Shown here one piece after another: positions 2,133 to 50,103 of a stretch of 64,000 nt of DNA (within the stretch, counting starts at the first letter, position 1; each line of letters starts with the position of its first letter). The notes beneath the pieces were generated by a model that was given only the letters and a program-made list of their open reading frames with translations, had not been told where the DNA came from and searched no databases. The stretch lies in sequence record LR756501.1; one strand, 5' to 3'. Position numbers and translations under genes: made by a program.

Positions 2133-2900
2133 TTAACTGGCGTAACAATATGTACAACAATGCCTACAAGTTTTAAATGTTCCTATATCAGCACTAGCAA
2201 TACAACCACACACTGGTCTCTGAGCCTTGTCCTTCTTCCTTGTTATCCATTTATTAGGACCACAAATCTGCTCAATTAACACTGGATCAATACATTTATT
2301 ATGTTCAATCCCATCTAAATCAATTACTTCAGCACAAGTTGCTAGTGTTAGTCCCCACACTTTATTAAGCTCTATAAGTTTTTGAGCTATAGATATTTTA
2401 GTTTGGTCGTCTATTTCTTGAAAATATTTAGCTAACTTTTTATATGGGTCTATATAACTAAAGACTAATTTATTAGTATATTGATATATTTGATCACCAA
2501 TATTTTTGATTCTTTTTATAATTTCTTCTTCACTTATATCGTCGTTAACTATAATAGGGTCGAATCTCCATATGACTTTTTCTTGTCCTATATCATTTGA
2601 TAAGTCTTTAAAAGTTTGTATTCTTTCTTCAAGTGACGGCACGTTAAGTTCGTACTCGGGATAATCGTTTAAAGTATATTGAAAATAATAATTAAAAGGT
2701 AGGTTCTTTATGTGTTTCATAAAGGGTCTTGGATTTTTAGTCCAGAAAACAGCGAAGTAAGTCTTATCAAAAGATACTTCGTAGCTCTGGTAAAAATTAG
2801 AAAGATCAATTTTACCATCTTTTAATTTTTGCATGAACCATTCTCCTCTAAAGGCTGGTATATCTTCTCTTCTACTTACTGATATTATGTTTGGTTCCAT
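2133..2900 (-). CDS. DUF1848 family protein (radical-SAM-like)
   Basis: IISVSRREDIPAF, VFWTKNP, WRFDPI, C-terminal CGC...DIG..TCRHCCTYCYA. Confidence 0.8.
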   Translation of the reverse strand: MEPNIISVSRREDIPAFRGEWFMQKLKDGKIDLSNFYQSYEVSFDKTYFAVFWTKNPRPFMKHIKNLPFNYYFQYTLNDYPEYELNVPSLEERIQTFKDLSNDIGQEKVIWRFDPIIVNDDISEEEIIKRIKNIGDQIYQYTNKLVFSYIDPYKKLAKYFQEIDDQTKISIAQKLIELNKVWGLTLATCAEVIDLDGIEHNKCIDPVLIEQICGPNKWITRKKDKAQRPVCGCIASADIGTFKTCRHCCTYCYAS

Positions 2901-3910
2901 TATATGTTTGTTATCCTGAATTTTCTTTTGTACATTTCTAAATCATCTATATAAACATTATATTTAAGTTTATCATTTTTATCGTAACATTTTATAGTAA
3001 ATTTATCTGATTTTATTTCTATTGGAAAAGATTTCCATTGCTCTTTATTTAAAGAAGTTTCGTATTTAGATACTTCTTTATTATCGTATTCTATATAAAT
3101 TGTCCATTTATTTTTCATATTATAATCCCAACAAAATAAGTGAGGCACTTCCCCTTTATAAAATATACCAACGTCTTCGTTATAAGCCGCGCTTTTAAGT
3201 CTTTTCGATAAATCTGATCTATCCTCACTAACAAAAGTGTGACCACAATGAGTAACGTGTTTAATTATTAAATTATCAGCGTTTCTACGAACCTGATAAT
3301 TCATATAAAGATCGTAATGGCAATATAAACCCAACATCTTTAAATCAAATAAAAACTCGTCCTTACTATTCATATTAATAAAGAAATTATCTAAAAACCA
3401 CCTAATATCCACGTACCAATAAAAACAACTAGCACAGAAAGTGTGTATTTCAAAATAACCCTTTTTATTTTCTGATTTTACTAATTCAGATATTTTCTTT
3501 AATTCAATTAATTCGTTCTCATATACGTCAAAGTCAGCAGTAAAATAATAAGAATGTGTATATCCTAATTCATTAGCCAACTTATAAACATTATAAACAG
3601 CCTTACAAAAAGTATATGAAATATCATCGACGACAAAAAGAAAAGGACTTACTTGCGTGTTTCCATCTATAAACCTTTTATCAGTATGCAACGATATTTT
3701 GTCGTGAAAAATATCGTCGAAATTAACTAATTGATCGTCACCATCGTATAGAAAATATTTAACTTTTTTCTGTACTTCTGTTGGTATAGGAGAATGACTA
3801 ACAAGTATTATATCCAATCCCATTTTAGAAATAGAATCTATGCATCGATTAAGTATATACTCGTCTGTATAATCTTGAACAAAATATTGTAGAATAACGC
3901 ATTCTTTCAT
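2900..3910 (-). CDS. hypothetical protein (glycan island)
   Basis: 336-aa ORF, co-oriented and overlapping neighbours. Confidence 0.55.
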   Translation of the reverse strand: MKECVILQYFVQDYTDEYILNRCIDSISKMGLDIILVSHSPIPTEVQKKVKYFLYDGDDQLVNFDDIFHDKISLHTDKRFIDGNTQVSPFLFVVDDISYTFCKAVYNVYKLANELGYTHSYYFTADFDVYENELIELKKISELVKSENKKGYFEIHTFCASCFYWYVDIRWFLDNFFINMNSKDEFLFDLKMLGLYCHYDLYMNYQVRRNADNLIIKHVTHCGHTFVSEDRSDLSKRLKSAAYNEDVGIFYKGEVPHLFCWDYNMKNKWTIYIEYDNKEVSKYETSLNKEQWKSFPIEIKSDKFTIKCYDKNDKLKYNVYIDDLEMYKRKFRITNI

Positions 3911-4269: not shown

Positions 4270-5485
4270 AACTCACCACTTCAAATTTTGGGCAAGGAAC
4301 AATAAATTTTCCACCGCCTATCAAATAATCTTTTTCTCTTTCTTTAAACTCGTTAATGAAATGCCAAGGTAGAATAAGTAAATAATCAGGTTTAGCGTGT
4401 CTCATTTCTTCTTCCGAATAAATTGGTATATTAGTGCCACTTGTCTTTAATCCCCATTTATAAGTGCTTCTTTCAGCTATTCCATCTATTAAAGTTTCAT
4501 CTAAACCAAAATATTGTAGAGTAGTGTTACCTTTTGTACTTGCTCCGTAACCCCAAACAGTTTTACCGTTGGCTTTAGCTTCTTTAATGAAGCTAATAGT
4601 TTGTGTTTTCAACTCATTTATTCTATTAAAGAAATCTGACCAAGTTTCCTCACTATCTAATTTCAAAGTCTTCTCGTATTCTAATAAAGAGTCAACTCTA
4701 AAATTAGCAACGTCTCTATAAGGTTGTGTGTAAAAATTATTCTCTTGTCCTTTTTTCTTTATAAAGACTCTGAAACTACCACCATTAATATCATTTAAGG
4801 TACAATCAACTACACTAAAACCGTTACGTTCAAGTATCTTTTTAATATTAAAAAGTGAGTAATAATAGATATGTTCGTGACAAATATTATCAAAAGCTAA
4901 TTGTTTAATCATCAGTGGAGTATAACTCATTTGCATAACTAGTAAACCATCGTCGTCCAGAACTTTATAAACGTCTTGTAGAAAAGGATCTGGTTTATCT
5001 AAATCATAAAACATCGCTATAATAGATATAACTTTGGCTTTCATTTTACCAAATTTAGATTTACTATAACTATCGTAATTGAAATAATCTTGAACTATAC
5101 AGTCTGCTTTCTTTTCAGATTCTTCTTTATAAGAATCGTCACAAGGATCAACTCCTACTTTGATTATATTCTTTGGCATGAATTCAAACATCGTGCCGTC
5201 GTTACAAGCTATATCTAGCCAAATATCATTTTCTTTTAATTTATGAACCTTTAATATAGATTCTACTACATTTTTAAGTTCGTCACGCATTGTTTGATTG
5301 ATACCACTTCTGTACCAGTATTTACCGTACATTGCGTCCATTGGAGCTGGTTTTTCTAATCTAACAGCACCAGTTTCTTCTTCCAGCATTAATTTAAGTT
5401 CGTGAGGTTTAGTAAAAAATTTAAGACTATTTGAAGGAATAAAGTCTGATACGTTTAACTTACCAAGCGTAAAAAGTTCTTTCAT
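4259..5485 (-). CDS. NDP-hexose C-methyltransferase-like protein (Methyltransf_13/14 type)
   Basis: YWYRSGINQTM, LDIACNDGT, FDNICHEHIYYY, NGGS, GYGASTKGNT, YLLILPWHF. Confidence 0.85.
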   Translation of the reverse strand: MKELFTLGKLNVSDFIPSNSLKFFTKPHELKLMLEEETGAVRLEKPAPMDAMYGKYWYRSGINQTMRDELKNVVESILKVHKLKENDIWLDIACNDGTMFEFMPKNIIKVGVDPCDDSYKEESEKKADCIVQDYFNYDSYSKSKFGKMKAKVISIIAMFYDLDKPDPFLQDVYKVLDDDGLLVMQMSYTPLMIKQLAFDNICHEHIYYYSLFNIKKILERNGFSVVDCTLNDINGGSFRVFIKKKGQENNFYTQPYRDVANFRVDSLLEYEKTLKLDSEETWSDFFNRINELKTQTISFIKEAKANGKTVWGYGASTKGNTTLQYFGLDETLIDGIAERSTYKWGLKTSGTNIPIYSEEEMRHAKPDYLLILPWHFINEFKEREKDYLIGGGKFIVPCPKFEVVSYGK

Positions 5486-5532: not shown

Positions 5533-6138
5533 TTAGGAATTGAATTTAAAATTTATCCTTTTACCACTATTTGTTCCAGTGTGTGGAAACGTTGCCACGT
5601 AGTTATATCTGATTACACAAGAAGGCCACACTATCGTTGATTTACCCATTCTTTGTTCTCTTGTTGTAGATACATTCCTATTATTATCTTCTATCACAAA
5701 AGTACAAGGTAAATCGTAACCATCTACAAATCTTACAGCTTCGTAAAAATGCCCTTCGTCCTCTGCTCCGTCACCCAAGAAACACCAAACTTTTTGATCT
5801 GAATTTTTCATCTTTAAACCGTAAGCTATACCTGCTGCTATACAAGGACCACCAGCTACAATAGAAGTAGATAAGAAATTTAACTCTTTGTCGAAAATAA
5901 ACATACTCTTACCCCTTTTAATATCTTCTTTTAATTTAACTGGATCACCACCAGAAAGTAAATAATGATAATGAGTTCTATGAGTTGATATTTTATAATC
6001 AGTCTCTTTGATGTTTTTAAATATATTTATTAATTCATCTTCGTTTCCACCGCATATATGTAAAAGATAAGGTACGTCGCCGTTCTCAAACATTTCTATG
6101 ACTTCATTTTCGAAATTAATTAGATCTTCTTTATTCAT
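5533..6138 (-). CDS. TPP-dependent enzyme, E1-alpha-like subunit
   Basis: LHICGGNE, STHRTHYH, GDGAEDEG...NN TPP motif; start moved to MNKEDL to avoid overlap. Confidence 0.85.
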   Translation of the reverse strand: MNKEDLINFENEVIEMFENGDVPYLLHICGGNEDELINIFKNIKETDYKISTHRTHYHYLLSGGDPVKLKEDIKRGKSMFIFDKELNFLSTSIVAGGPCIAAGIAYGLKMKNSDQKVWCFLGDGAEDEGHFYEAVRFVDGYDLPCTFVIEDNNRNVSTTREQRMGKSTIVWPSCVIRYNYVATFPHTGTNSGKRINFKFNS

Positions 6139-45965: not shown

Positions 45966-46042
45966 TGACCCAGAGGGGATTCGAACCCATATTTTCATCC
46001 GTTATGCACGTGGAGTTTAGAAGACTCTGCCATTACAGGGCC
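45966..46042 (-). ncRNA. atypical tRNA-Arg(TCT)-like RNA: no D-arm, long variable insert
   Basis: GGCCCTG/CTGGGTC acceptor, GAGT-CT-TCT-AA-ACTC, about 22-nt insert, TTCGAAT T-loop. Confidence 0.6.
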
Positions 46043-46117: not shown

Positions 46118-46202
46118 TGGAGCGGCTAGTGAGAATCGAACTCACATCCTCGGTTTGGAAGACCGACATAATCTGCTTTTGGCTCCATTATACGATAGCC
46201 GC
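46118..46202 (-). tRNA. tRNA-Gly(TCC) with about 12-nt D-loop insertion
   Basis: GCGGCTA/TAGCCGC-T-CCA, TCGGT-CT-TCC-AA-ACCGA. Confidence 0.8.
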
Positions 46203-46323: not shown

Positions 46324-46422
46324 AGCGAAGAAAAGGATTCGAACCTTTGACTACCCACCAAATTCATCTGCACTTAAACAGTATGGCTGATCATGGCAAT
46401 TTTCCCACTAAACTACCTCCGC
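46324..46422 (-). ncRNA. tRNA-like RNA with 33-nt expanded anticodon loop
   Basis: Acceptor GCGGAGG/TCTTCGC, D and T arms normal, TGCCA/TGGTG enclosing 33 nt. Confidence 0.65.
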
Positions 46423-47252: not shown

Positions 47253-47327
47253 TGGAGATGGCCGGGTTCGAACCGGCTACCTTTTGCCTGCCAGGCAAAC
47301 GCTCTCAACCTACTGAGCTACATCCCC
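47253..47327 (-). tRNA. tRNA-Ala(GGC)
   Basis: Full cloverleaf, G3:U70, A73. Confidence 0.93.
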
Positions 47328-47404
47328 ATAGTCCTGCGTGTTACCATTAATCACTACCGACCCCTGAGGGGCCAGGTGGGGATCGAACCCACATCTCAGG
47401 ATTT
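47328..47404 (-). ncRNA. circularly permuted tRNA (3' half before 5' half, break in anticodon loop)
   Basis: AAA-TCCTG-AGAT-GTGGG-TTCGATC-CCCAC-CTGGCCCC-TCA-GGGGTCGG-TA-GTG-ATTAATGGTAA-CAC-G-CAGGA-CTAT. Confidence 0.75.
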
Positions 47405-47479
47405 TGGTGGAAAGAATGAGATTCGAAATCATACCGCCCCAGCATCCACCGGGGTCTTCTAACATTAAACTACCTTCCC
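47405..47479 (-). ncRNA. tRNA-like RNA with non-canonical anticodon loop
   Basis: GGGAAGG/TCTTTCC-A-CCA, CCCCGG-TGGATG-CTGGGG arm. Confidence 0.55.
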
Positions 47480-48355
47480 ATATAAATTCTTCAACTCTAA
47501 TATATCGATGAACTTATTTACTGTTTCTTTATAATATTTACCATGTCTTTCATCGAAATCTTCGATTCTTTTTTCTAATTCTTCTAAGGTTATTGAACAA
47601 TCATCACATTTACTTTGATTATTCCTATTTACAATCAATTCACAATTTGCGGGATGAGCTAATAATAATGGGCTTATTAATCTTCGAAATCCCTCTCTTA
47701 CTGAAAACATGTGATCTCTACTAACACCATTTACATTATTTCCTCTGTTTTTTGCGCTATACCACCCATATTTTTCAACTAATTTAAAATCAAATTCATA
47801 ATCCTTTAATGAAAACTTAAATCCTGATAAATCATGATACATTTTATAATCTGACATATTTTTTAAATAATATTCTTTCTTACATTTTGCATTACAATAT
47901 GTTCTATTTCTAAATTTATATTCTAATATTTCATTACAATTTAAACATTTATTAGGGTTATCATAATATATTGATTTCTCTTTTAAATATAAGTCTTTTT
48001 TATCAAATAAGAAATTCTTATAGGCTGAATCAATTAAAGCATTTCTACCTTCATCAGTTAAATTGTATTTTGTTCCTTTTCTTTTTTTGTTATTAATAAT
48101 AGCTGAGCATTTATGACTACAAAAATTACCATTGTCTTGTATTTTATCGTATGGTATAATACTTTCACAATTTTTACAAATCTTTGGACTAGATAAATAT
48201 ATTACTTCATTCTCATATCTTTTTTGTTTGAATGTTTCTTTTACCTTATCATAATTTCTAATATATTTATTAACATAAATATTTCTACATTTCAATGAAC
48301 AATAAATATTTTTACCATTGGTTTCATTTTCACATTCAAGATTTTTACACTTCAT
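47465..48355 (-). CDS. HNH-like endonuclease with Cys-rich zinc modules (putative homing endonuclease)
   Basis: Three CxxC...(Y/F)CxxxC repeats; SRDHMFSV...HPANCELI...N..K. Confidence 0.75.
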   Translation of the reverse strand: MKCKNLECENETNGKNIYCSLKCRNIYVNKYIRNYDKVKETFKQKRYENEVIYLSSPKICKNCESIIPYDKIQDNGNFCSHKCSAIINNKKRKGTKYNLTDEGRNALIDSAYKNFLFDKKDLYLKEKSIYYDNPNKCLNCNEILEYKFRNRTYCNAKCKKEYYLKNMSDYKMYHDLSGFKFSLKDYEFDFKLVEKYGWYSAKNRGNNVNGVSRDHMFSVREGFRRLISPLLLAHPANCELIVNRNNQSKCDDCSITLEELEKRIEDFDERHGKYYKETVNKFIDILELKNLYGKVV

Positions 48356-49417: not shown

Positions 49418-49422
49418 ATTTG

Positions 49423-49524
49423 TGGACTTGATGAGAATTGAACTCACTTGGGATGCCTCCCTTTTCCTAACCCTGCTCGGACCCCACCGATCAATGCTTT
49501 CGACAACATTACACAAACAAGCCC
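49423..49524 (-). ncRNA. tRNA-like RNA with Ala identity (G3:U70, A73) and no canonical anticodon loop
   Basis: GGGCTTG/CAAGTCC-A, TCGG-TGGGGT-CCGA, GGGA-GGCA-TCCC, normal T-arm. Confidence 0.55.
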
Positions 49525-49609: not shown

Positions 49610-49704
49610 GATATGGCAAGAGACCTTTACTCTGCTTCCCTGGGCAAGCCTTTCGAGCTGCCCCGGGTGGGATTCGAACCCAAATTTAACGATATTGCCA
49701 TATC
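49610..49704 (-). ncRNA. YrlA/Y-RNA-like permuted tRNA mimic
   Basis: 10-bp closing stem GATATGGCAA/TTGCCATATC enclosing T-arm TGGG-TTCGAAT-CCCA, loop-closed acceptor-like stem, D-like hairpin. Confidence 0.65.
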
Positions 49705-49845: not shown

Positions 49846-50010
49846 TGGAGTAAGTGGGATTCGAACCCACACCGCTGAAGACTAGTAACTCGCTTCCCTT
49901 GCTCATTCTTTTTTCACCACCTCAACATAAGGTCGCTATAGGTGCATCCGCAATTCGTCATTCAATCAGGTTATCGTTGCCTGTACAGACCGCCACTCTG
50001 TTGTTACCCC
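49846..50010 (-). ncRNA. 165-nt Ala-acceptor RNA, possible mini-tmRNA
   Basis: GGGGTAA/TTACTCC-A (G3:U70), T-arm GTGGG-TTCGAAT-CCCAC, about 130-nt insert containing GGC AAC GAT AAC CTG ATT GAA TGA. Confidence 0.5.
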
Positions 50011-50016
50011 AATTTG

Positions 50017-50103
50017 TCTAAGTGAGAGGACTCGAACCTCCAGAGTTATATTAACACTCGCTTCCAAGGCGAGATCGCTATCCAATTACGGGCTTACACC
50101 TAG
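50017..50103 (-). tRNA. tRNA-Pro(TGG) with long variable arm
   Basis: CTAGGTG/CACTTAG-A (C1-G72, A73), CTCGC-CT-TGG-AA-GCGAG, GTTA-ATA-TAAC arm. Confidence 0.82.

Follow-up and report, generated by a model that had tools for sequence, protein, structure and literature searches.

A conserved permuted tRNA-like gene in the tRNA array of a huge phage and its possible relation to a phage Ro60-like protein

We analyzed a 64,000-nucleotide (nt) stretch of phage DNA (the window; positions 317,061-381,060 of record LR756501.1, 100% identity) whose minus-strand array of transfer RNA (tRNA) genes contains a 77-nt unit, termed P1 here, in which the 3' half of a tRNA body is encoded before the 5' half. 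As judged from the DNA and its relatives, P1 is a genuine conserved permuted tRNA-like gene and not a decayed duplication. Its product is very probably a non-decoding tRNA mimic rather than a tRNA precursor, and we give about even chances to the more specific reading that P1 is a YrlA-type RNA, for which a predicted Ro60-like protein of the same phage would be the most likely partner. The record, which comprises 735,411 bp and is labeled 'uncultured phage', comes from a phage placed among the Mahaphages, for which a host in the Bacteroidetes is predicted (Al-Shayeb et al. 2020, PMC7162821); the window is AT-rich (~30% G+C).

Layout, fold and conservation of P1

Read along the minus strand, P1 consists of a closing stem, a T arm, a hairpin-capped acceptor helix, a D arm and the second strand of the closing stem (Table 1), with the closing stem occupying the place of the anticodon stem in a tRNA. 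Elements of the tRNA elbow are kept, namely the T loop, the GG of the D loop, the U8 and A9 equivalents and a coaxial acceptor/T helix. As a linear sequence the 77 nt gave 0 genes with ARAGORN and just a truncated 18.3-bit match to the Rfam tRNA model (RF00005); with circular topology, the same letters were called as a tRNA across the origin with the anticodon ata, and the minimum free energy (MFE) and centroid structures from RNAfold were both exactly the permuted cloverleaf. On these three grounds (the sequence itself, an ARAGORN call obtained only in circular form and the MFE fold), the permuted layout that a first-pass annotation had read from this DNA proved literally correct. When a 77-nt circular ARAGORN scan was slid along both strands of the whole window, origin-crossing calls were confined to the tRNA array, with none on the plus strand, which argues that the arrangement is not a chance product of this DNA. 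Moving the cut by a few bases changed the 'anticodon' of P1 to caa, aaa, ata or atg, so that P1 has no intrinsic anticodon, and its limits shift with the reading of the flanks. Doubled 240-nt tiles submitted to ARAGORN with introns allowed flagged the P1 locus alone, with an odd parse and at doubtful sensitivity; hand-written structural scans were too strict (they missed a second unit, P2) or noisy in AT-rich DNA, and covariance models were used instead.

Relatives of P1 came from contigs carrying homologues of a 296-amino-acid (aa) protein encoded close to it; these contigs carry tRNA arrays from related phages, in which the order of genes is conserved in part. Starting from P1 alone, we built a covariance model (R1) that already recovered homologues in other phage contigs, and a model rebuilt from four matches (R2) was run on 94 sources; P1 itself scored 94.8-112 bits with these models. 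R2 matches below ~40 bits were mostly junctions of tandem tRNAs (up to 39.8 bits); once all matches that overlapped ARAGORN tRNA calls had been removed, eight clear P1-type copies were left, the window's own and seven at loci in related huge-phage contigs (Table 1), all in the same permuted order. The neighboring 296-aa protein at these loci is 49-75% identical to that of the window, and P1-type units always occur as one unit of a tRNA array. Matches at loci L069, L072, L029, L051 and L036 were inspected and rejected as members.

Standard pairs filled every base-pair cell of the eight-copy alignment (154/154), and 15 of the 20 pairs had changed on both sides, including 5/5 in the closing stem, 7/7 of those modeled in the acceptor helix and 2/5 in the T arm, where the other three were invariant. 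Compensatory changes were present in all four helices, and sliding the partners by 1-3 columns as a control reduced pairing to 35-47%. The closing stem, for example, reads TCCTG/CAGGA in the window, CACACC/GGTGTG in L006, CTCTGC/GTAGAG in L004 and GTCTG/CAGAC in L010, and the acceptor stem, whose sequence differs between lineages, includes GGGTCGG/CTGGCCC, GTCGAA/TTCGAC, GGGTAGG/TCTATCC and TAATCAG/TTGATTA (5'/3' strand). The first-pass annotation had proposed conserved permutation with compensatory changes as a check on its reading, and this is what the seven further copies display. The acceptor cap ranges from UCA in the window and UUCG in L010, L016 and L033 to 17 nt in L004, 43 nt in L006 and 91 nt in L030; the tetraloop is closed as U(UUCG)G in L010 and L016 and as C(UUCG)G on 7 bp in L033, and the long caps fold as helix extensions. 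A G3:U70 pair occurs in L004, L030 and L033, while the window copy has G3-C70. An exact or near-exact match to the DNA pattern of the P1 core was found 0 times in IMG/VR, and the rest of LR756501.1, analyzed as 15 separate, unjoined pieces, contained no further unit above 27 bits.

Flanks, partner protein and rival explanations

From the window alone it had been proposed that P1 starts right after a CCA and is wedged without spacers between its neighbors, that joining its ends gives an exact 7-nt anticodon loop (CUAU-AAA), that an extra G-C pair recalls the G-1:C73 identity of tRNA-His, and that the unit could be circularized and re-opened. P1 does abut the CCA that follows the 47479-47408 gene and the G1 of tRNA-Ala(GGC) at 47327, and the 7-nt loop does form; the loop, however, arises in the window copy alone and then only if the ends are chosen in one way, and L006 has CGAAA after the discriminator A in place of CCA. 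In L006, L010, L016, L004, L030 and L033 the flanks are different: those that would form the loop are CGAAA/CCAT (5 + 4 nt) in L006 and CGA/ATGAAT (3 + 6, or 4 + 7, nt) in L010, and in L004 and L030 the unit comes after a stop codon and not after a tRNA. Throughout the arrays of the window and loci L001-L093, spacers keep strictly to one pattern, ordinarily of 4-6 nt, in which C comes after the discriminator, then an A-rich run and a T at -1 before the next G1, with frequent leaders such as AAAT, ATAT, TAAT, CAAT and CCAT (T at -1 in 387/547 tRNAs of the examined loci). The P1 flanks, CCAAAA and CTAT, match this pattern and, by their sequence, are ordinary inter-unit spacers, not 'zero spacers'. 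The G-1:C73 pair is restricted to the window copy, where it is the closing pair of the triloop, and the comparison with tRNA-His did not hold. The tight UCA and UUCG caps, seen in three lineages, argue against re-opening of the acceptor, and ordinary tRNA-Tyr(GTA) (one) and tRNA-His(GTG) (two) genes elsewhere in the phage leave no decoding gap for P1 to fill. The circularize-and-reopen route is thus not supported by the sequences, and the accompanying caveat, that ends left by RNases P and Z are the wrong chemistry for RtcB, is moot for a circle, yet an RtcB-family gene does adjoin the Ro60-like gene in the window.

A true permuted tRNA, its ends ligated by RtcB or an ATP-dependent ligase into the loop CUAUAAA with anticodon AUA and its cap opened afterwards, is for the same reasons very improbable, even though the flanks after CCA and before G1 total exactly 7 nt in the window and genes for two RtcB homologues and a single PF09414 RNA ligase are present in the phage: the homologues of P1 conserve neither the length nor the sequence of the loop, and the choice of cut sets the 'anticodon'. 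We also know of no Tyr anticodon with A34 in nature and of no splicing-endonuclease pathway in bacteria. Far-fetched to a still greater degree is the idea that P1 has no function and arose by chance or by the decay of two tandem tRNA copies. Tandem tRNAs separated by 3-5 nt are common in the array and give similar R2 matches, and tandem tRNAs have been flagged as false positives for YrlA (Chen et al. 2014, PMC4201824). Against this, no relative examined has two intact tandem tRNAs at the place of P1, which, as far as a comparison of sequences can, disposes of the decayed duplication that the first-pass annotation had set as its own refutation; none of the 59 tRNAs of the phage (ARAGORN, window and genome pieces) is a close parent of either half; and the permuted unit itself is conserved, with covariation in each helix.

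Lacking both an anticodon loop and a free CCA end, P1 RNA should be neither chargeable nor able to decode, in keeping with the non-chargeable mimic or decoy that had been offered as the other possibility and that fits the capped acceptor end and the lack of a conserved anticodon loop. An RNA that is neither charged nor decoding would act like the tRNA-like domain of bacterial YrlA, and the phage encodes a candidate partner. In AlphaFold2, a DUF2828/DUF7788 protein encoded in the window, modeled with 40 homologues, reached a predicted local distance difference test score (pLDDT) of 90.2, with a predicted TROVE ring and vWA domain, and the top 11 Foldseek matches in the PDB were all Ro60 or TROVE (probability 1.00, ~485-556 aligned columns, TM-scores 0.44-0.60), among them complexes of Ro60 from frog and human as well as the Ro60 that Thermus phage phiLo encodes, and the next best were vWA domains only. 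An RtcB-family open reading frame (ORF) lies directly upstream on the same strand, and this pairing of a predicted Ro60 fold with RtcB is the gene pairing that surrounds YrlA in bacteria. DUF2828 is a very large family, with 7,129 homologues among 8,000 scored candidates, and we found no functional characterization of it in the literature.

In the mechanism that we propose, P1 would be co-transcribed with the tRNA array and released by the enzymes that free the neighboring tRNAs, the RNase P cut at G1 of tRNA-Ala generating its 3' end and 3' maturation of the upstream tRNA-like RNA its 5' end. The RNA would adopt an L-shaped fold and act as a tRNA mimic, serving as partner or regulator of the Ro60-like ring protein encoded beside RtcB in a phage version of the Rsr/Y RNA/RtcB module for RNA repair and quality control. 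Such a module might keep the large phage tRNA set working or occupy host factors that recognize tRNA shape. A broader proposal, which we hold only tentatively and consider doubtful, is that the tRNA-processing machinery would release a minimal Y RNA from the tRNA operons of huge phages, a tRNA-body mimic devoid of the known Ro motif that docks the Ro60-like ring and RtcB onto damaged tRNAs or blunts defenses that sense tRNA shape.

Several observations weigh against the assignment of P1 to YrlA and of the protein to its partner. By definition, a YrlA RNA contains a tRNA-like domain, has close to its 5' end the motif GNCGAAN0-1G, which is the presumed Rsr contact, and is encoded <=4 kb from a Ro60 (rsr) gene (Chen et al. 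2014, PMC4201824). The Rfam YrlA model (RF02553, positions 28-81) aligned to 47395-47338 with T arm, acceptor-like hairpin and D arm in order, so that the earlier comparison with YrlA stands as to architecture; the score, on the other hand, was 16.8 bits vs. a gathering score of 69, no YrlA was found at the gathering threshold in the whole window, and the GNCGAAN0-1G motif is absent from all eight P1-type copies and P2, 30-nt flanks included. The closing stem of P1 has just 5-6 bp, without a long Ro-binding stem, and P1 lies inside a tRNA array on the same strand as the Ro60-like gene and ~22 kb away from it, not within 4 kb. By sequence, then, P1 has a YrlA-like tRNA domain but falls outside three defining tests of the YrlA family. 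The Ro60-like identity of the protein is a prediction from fold only: in a Pfam scan of 146 ORFs of 330-720 aa genome-wide, TROVE was not among the families in the matches listed for it, and searches against PDB sequences and NCBIfam gave no match. An Rfam search around the RtcB and Ro60-like genes returned terminator-like hairpins only and no Y-like RNA, and an RtcB neighbor was not seen beside the Ro60-like gene of the relative at L110. The covariation, finally, comes from an alignment fitted to the model, with eight rows of which about six are independent. ORFs around P1 and at its relatives' loci gave no match to TROVE or DUF2828.

Some of the same facts suit other explanations. A decoy or sponge that works alone, without a Ro60-like protein, and would titrate a host reader of tRNA shape (a defense nuclease or a processing or modification enzyme), is to our minds unlikely, though it would account for the loss of both functional ends beside conserved elbow elements, for the missing Ro-binding motif and for a Ro60-like gene 22 kb off, and it would suit a unit placed among phage tRNAs that are themselves thought to offset tRNA-targeting defenses (Al-Shayeb 2020, PMC7162821). 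Its target is not identifiable from the sequence, the unconserved acceptor-stem sequence means that no single tRNA species is imitated, and the Ro60-like/RtcB pair in the window offers a more specific partner. Quite improbable is a two-piece tRNA-like RNA, in which RNase P would cut the cap at G1, the 3' strand would be trimmed and CCA-tailed and the pieces would stay paired. RNase P takes its main cue from the acceptor helix, here 7-8 bp long, and Mycobacterium smegmatis YrlA, with a 7-bp acceptor, sets a precedent, since in vivo it is cleaved by RNase P and receives a CCA tail (PMC4201824); moreover, the cap is as unconstrained (3-91 nt) as a removable linker would be and G3:U70 is present in three copies, which makes this course plausible for the long-capped ones. 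The 3-nt loop on an 8-bp stem in the window and the UUCG loops of L010, L016 and L033 nevertheless look built to stay shut, acceptor identity is not conserved, and even the long caps extend the helix. We see a slightly slimmer chance that P1 serves processing or stability, as punctuation of the array transcript or protection of the 3' end of an upstream mRNA, which would agree with its place directly after the stop codon of the 296-aa ORF in L004, L005 and L030 and with spacers patterned like those of tRNAs; yet ordinary tRNAs already punctuate the array, nothing would be gained between two tRNA genes as in the window, L006, L010 and L016, and a capped acceptor gives RNase P no free 5' leader.

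The tRNA array and its other units

The array occupies 42.3-50.3 kb of the window on the minus strand and includes at least 16 ARAGORN tRNAs together with several weaker tRNA-like matches. Full CCA is encoded by a few of its tRNAs, e.g. tRNA-Thr(TGT) at 48906-48819. The gene upstream of P1 (47408-47479) was not called by ARAGORN in the window, and its homologues were called as Ser(gga), Phe(gaa) or a tRNA with a 4-base anticodon (ggat). This odd gene adjoins the permuted unit in four lineages (Table 1), keeps an anticodon region that is conserved but non-canonical (GGTGGATGCT, flanked by CCCC and GGGG) and is overlapped over its first 15 nt by the 296-aa ORF. The cysteine-rich product of that ORF had no Pfam match and no relatives in IMG/VR; 465 homologues were found, of which all loci checked with ARAGORN sit within phage tRNA arrays, some show a faint DUF2116 zinc-ribbon match, and R-D-H and H-P-x-N-C are among the columns that do not vary. 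The protein may act on or bind nucleic acids, as a nuclease or a binding protein associated with tRNA arrays.

The second permuted unit, P2, has a weak tRNA-Ala(CGC)-like gene on one side and tRNA-Arg(CCT) on the other, each separated from it by a 4-nt spacer. Its fully paired closing stem of 10 bp (GATATGGCAA / TTGCCATATC) is combined with a T arm, a D-arm-like hairpin and an acceptor helix that ends in a 14-nt mini-hairpin with CGAA in its loop; the MFE fold reproduces the permuted structure (z = -4.1). Since it scores weakly with R2 (15.6 bits), P2 probably represents a separate subfamily. A partial homologue sharing its 5' part occurs in L006 (2775-2880), and a short stretch within this apparent homologue (2880-3000) would encode an HNH-type motif, which may be all that is left of a homing endonuclease that had entered the array.

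Other unusual genes were seen in the same array. Two long tRNA-like RNAs, of ~155 nt (~49856-50010, minus strand) and ~105 nt (49420-49524, minus strand), combine an ordinary acceptor stem bearing G3:U70 and an ordinary T arm with a large insert in place of the D and anticodon arms; the shorter gave an 18-bit match to the Rfam transfer-messenger RNA (tmRNA) model, the longer has a homologue at L007 ~3410-3590, and the pair may represent either mini-tmRNA-like RNAs or insert-bearing derivatives of tRNA-Ala. Further non-standard tRNA-like genes missed by ARAGORN lie at ~50012-50098, 46324-46422, 46127-46192 and 45966-46042 (all minus strand) and include a class-II-like gene with the loop CTTGGAA, a tRNA of 99 nt that carries an insert (38.6 bits in Rfam) and weak matches of 30.7 and 22.5 bits. 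Outside the window, two tandem tRNAs with anticodon CUA (amber suppressors) occur at LR756501.1 690585-690738 (locus L107), a hint that TAG is possibly read through in some genes of the phage and that ORF calls using TAG as a stop may be split. Elsewhere in the record, the PF09414 RNA ligase sits between tRNA arrays at 170-174 kb and 186-188 kb, and the second RtcB homologue (E 2.9e-54) lies within 427-621 kb.

Table 1. Features of P1, its relatives and neighboring or related genes (window positions unless a locus or record is named).
Feature	Position	Strand	Remarks
P1 permuted tRNA-like RNA unit	47328..47404 (77 nt)	minus	Core, closing stem to closing stem, 47401-47332
P1 5' flank AAA	47404-47402	minus	
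P1 closing-stem 5' strand TCCTG	47397..47401	minus	Pairs with CAGGA 47336-47332; open-ended
P1 segment AGAT	47396-47393	minus	
P1 T arm GTGGG-TTCGATC-CCCAC	47376..47392	minus	Stem GTGGG/CCCAC, loop TTCGATC
P1 acceptor-like helix, 8 bp	47357..47375	minus	CTGGCCCC (47375-47368) / GGGGTCGG (47364-47357)
P1 acceptor cap	47367-47365	minus	UCA triloop (DNA TCA)
P1 TA	47356-47355	minus	U8, A9 equivalents, before D arm
P1 D arm	47338..47354	minus	3-bp stem GTG/CAC, 11-nt loop with GG
P1 single G	47337	minus	
P1 closing-stem 3' strand CAGGA	47336-47332	minus	
P1 3' flank CTAT	47331-47328	minus	
P1-type copy, window	47404-47328		
P1-type copy, L006	5037-5150		Same place, immediately before tRNA-Ala(GGC)
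P1-type copy, L004	4876-4967		Between 296-aa ORF stop codon and odd tRNA-like gene
P1-type copy, L005	1144-1235		Placed as in L004
P1-type copy, L030	1433-1596		Placed as in L004
P1-type copy, L010 (same contig as L017)	4285-4360		Immediately after tRNA-Ala(GGC)
P1-type copy, L016	1982-2057		Placed as in L010
P1-type copy, L033 (also in L034, L035)	5569-5646		
P2, second permuted tRNA-like unit	49610..49704	minus	
tRNA-Ala(GGC)	47253..47327	minus	ARAGORN, Rfam; G1 at 47327 abuts P1
Upstream non-canonical (odd) tRNA-like gene	47408..47479	minus	Rfam tRNA 33.6 bits; CCA at 47407-47405
Odd tRNA-like gene, L004	4968-5041		
Odd tRNA-like gene, L006	4961-5035		
Odd tRNA-like gene, L030	1599-1671		
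296-aa cysteine-rich protein ORF	47468-48355	minus	
Ro60-like protein, 486 aa	23714..25171	minus	Pfam DUF2828 + DUF7788
RtcB-family RNA ligase ORF, 346 aa	25391..26428	minus	RtcB profile positions 150-425 of 426, E 3.4e-25
ATP-dependent RNA ligase	LR756501.1 181,543-182,568 (L097 37543-38568)	minus	PF09414 + PHA02142 OB domain; outside window

Comparison with known permuted and Y-like RNAs

In the permuted tRNA genes of Cyanidioschyzon merolae, some green algae and Thermofilum, the 3' half precedes the 5' half, as in P1, and a linker lies between the acceptor strands; these genes give real tRNAs by way of a circular intermediate (splicing endonuclease and ligase), in which the joined ends restore a proper loop. 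P1 differs in that its joined loop is not conserved, its caps form tight hairpins and its host is bacterial. A similar gene order is also seen in the two-piece (permuted) tmRNA of alpha-proteobacteria, cyanobacteria and others (Rfam clan CL00001), where the T arm and acceptor 3' strand precede the acceptor 5' strand and the intervening segment, like that between the acceptor strands of P1-type units, is of variable length. P1 has neither a tag reading frame nor pseudoknots, however, and the window copy lacks G3:U70; the tmRNA model (RF00023) gave just an 11-bit local T-arm match on P1, and an ARAGORN tmRNA search of the genome pieces made no call. Among phage RNAs, RNAs C and D of T4 (species 1 and 2) are small stable RNAs, of unknown function, that are co-transcribed and co-processed with tRNAs; to our knowledge they are not permuted cloverleaves, and we liken them to P1 without a comparison of sequences. 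We found no description of permuted tRNA-like units in phage tRNA arrays in the literature. The study from which the record stems used tRNAscan-SE and ARAGORN, its tRNA calls coming from tRNAscan-SE only (PMC7162821), and neither program detects permuted units. With tRNA finders and Rfam thresholds both overlooking such units, descriptions of the non-coding genes in huge-phage tRNA arrays are incomplete.

Closer in their protein partner are the Y-like RNAs Yrl1 and Yrl2 encoded by Thermus phage phiLo and bound by its Ro60 (PMC12135203), a case of a phage Ro60-fold protein with phage small RNAs; its PDB structures 9kop and 9l5y belong to the best fold matches found for the protein of the window. 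Yrl1 and Yrl2 differ from P1 in lying just upstream of the Ro60 gene and in having a stem-bulge-stem form with a CGAA motif, and they are presented without a tRNA-like description (PMC12135203). A TROVE protein with a tRNA-like partner has also been reported in a subset of jumbo phages (PMC7824862). With YrlA of bacteria and phages, P1 shares the same permuted topology (variable region, T arm, acceptor-like stem-loop and D arm), closed by the two ends of the RNA, and the tRNA elbow nucleotides; its genome also encodes RtcB and a protein with a predicted Ro60-type fold, a divergent DUF2828/DUF7788 form. If the broader proposal of a minimal Y RNA is right, Y-RNA biology would be linked directly to the phage-host conflict over tRNAs, and the very large, uncharacterized DUF2828/DUF7788 family would gain a function; the predicted fold already provides a concrete structural hypothesis for these Pfam families. 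P1 would likewise be a compact natural system for asking what purpose the tRNA-like domain of Y RNAs serves, a question open since its description in 2014. Set beside YrlA and the phiLo RNAs, a conserved permuted tRNA body inside a tRNA operon, in a phage that also has a pair of genes for a predicted Ro60-fold protein and RtcB, suggests that Y-RNA-type ribonucleoproteins of phages are wider and more varied than the known cases.

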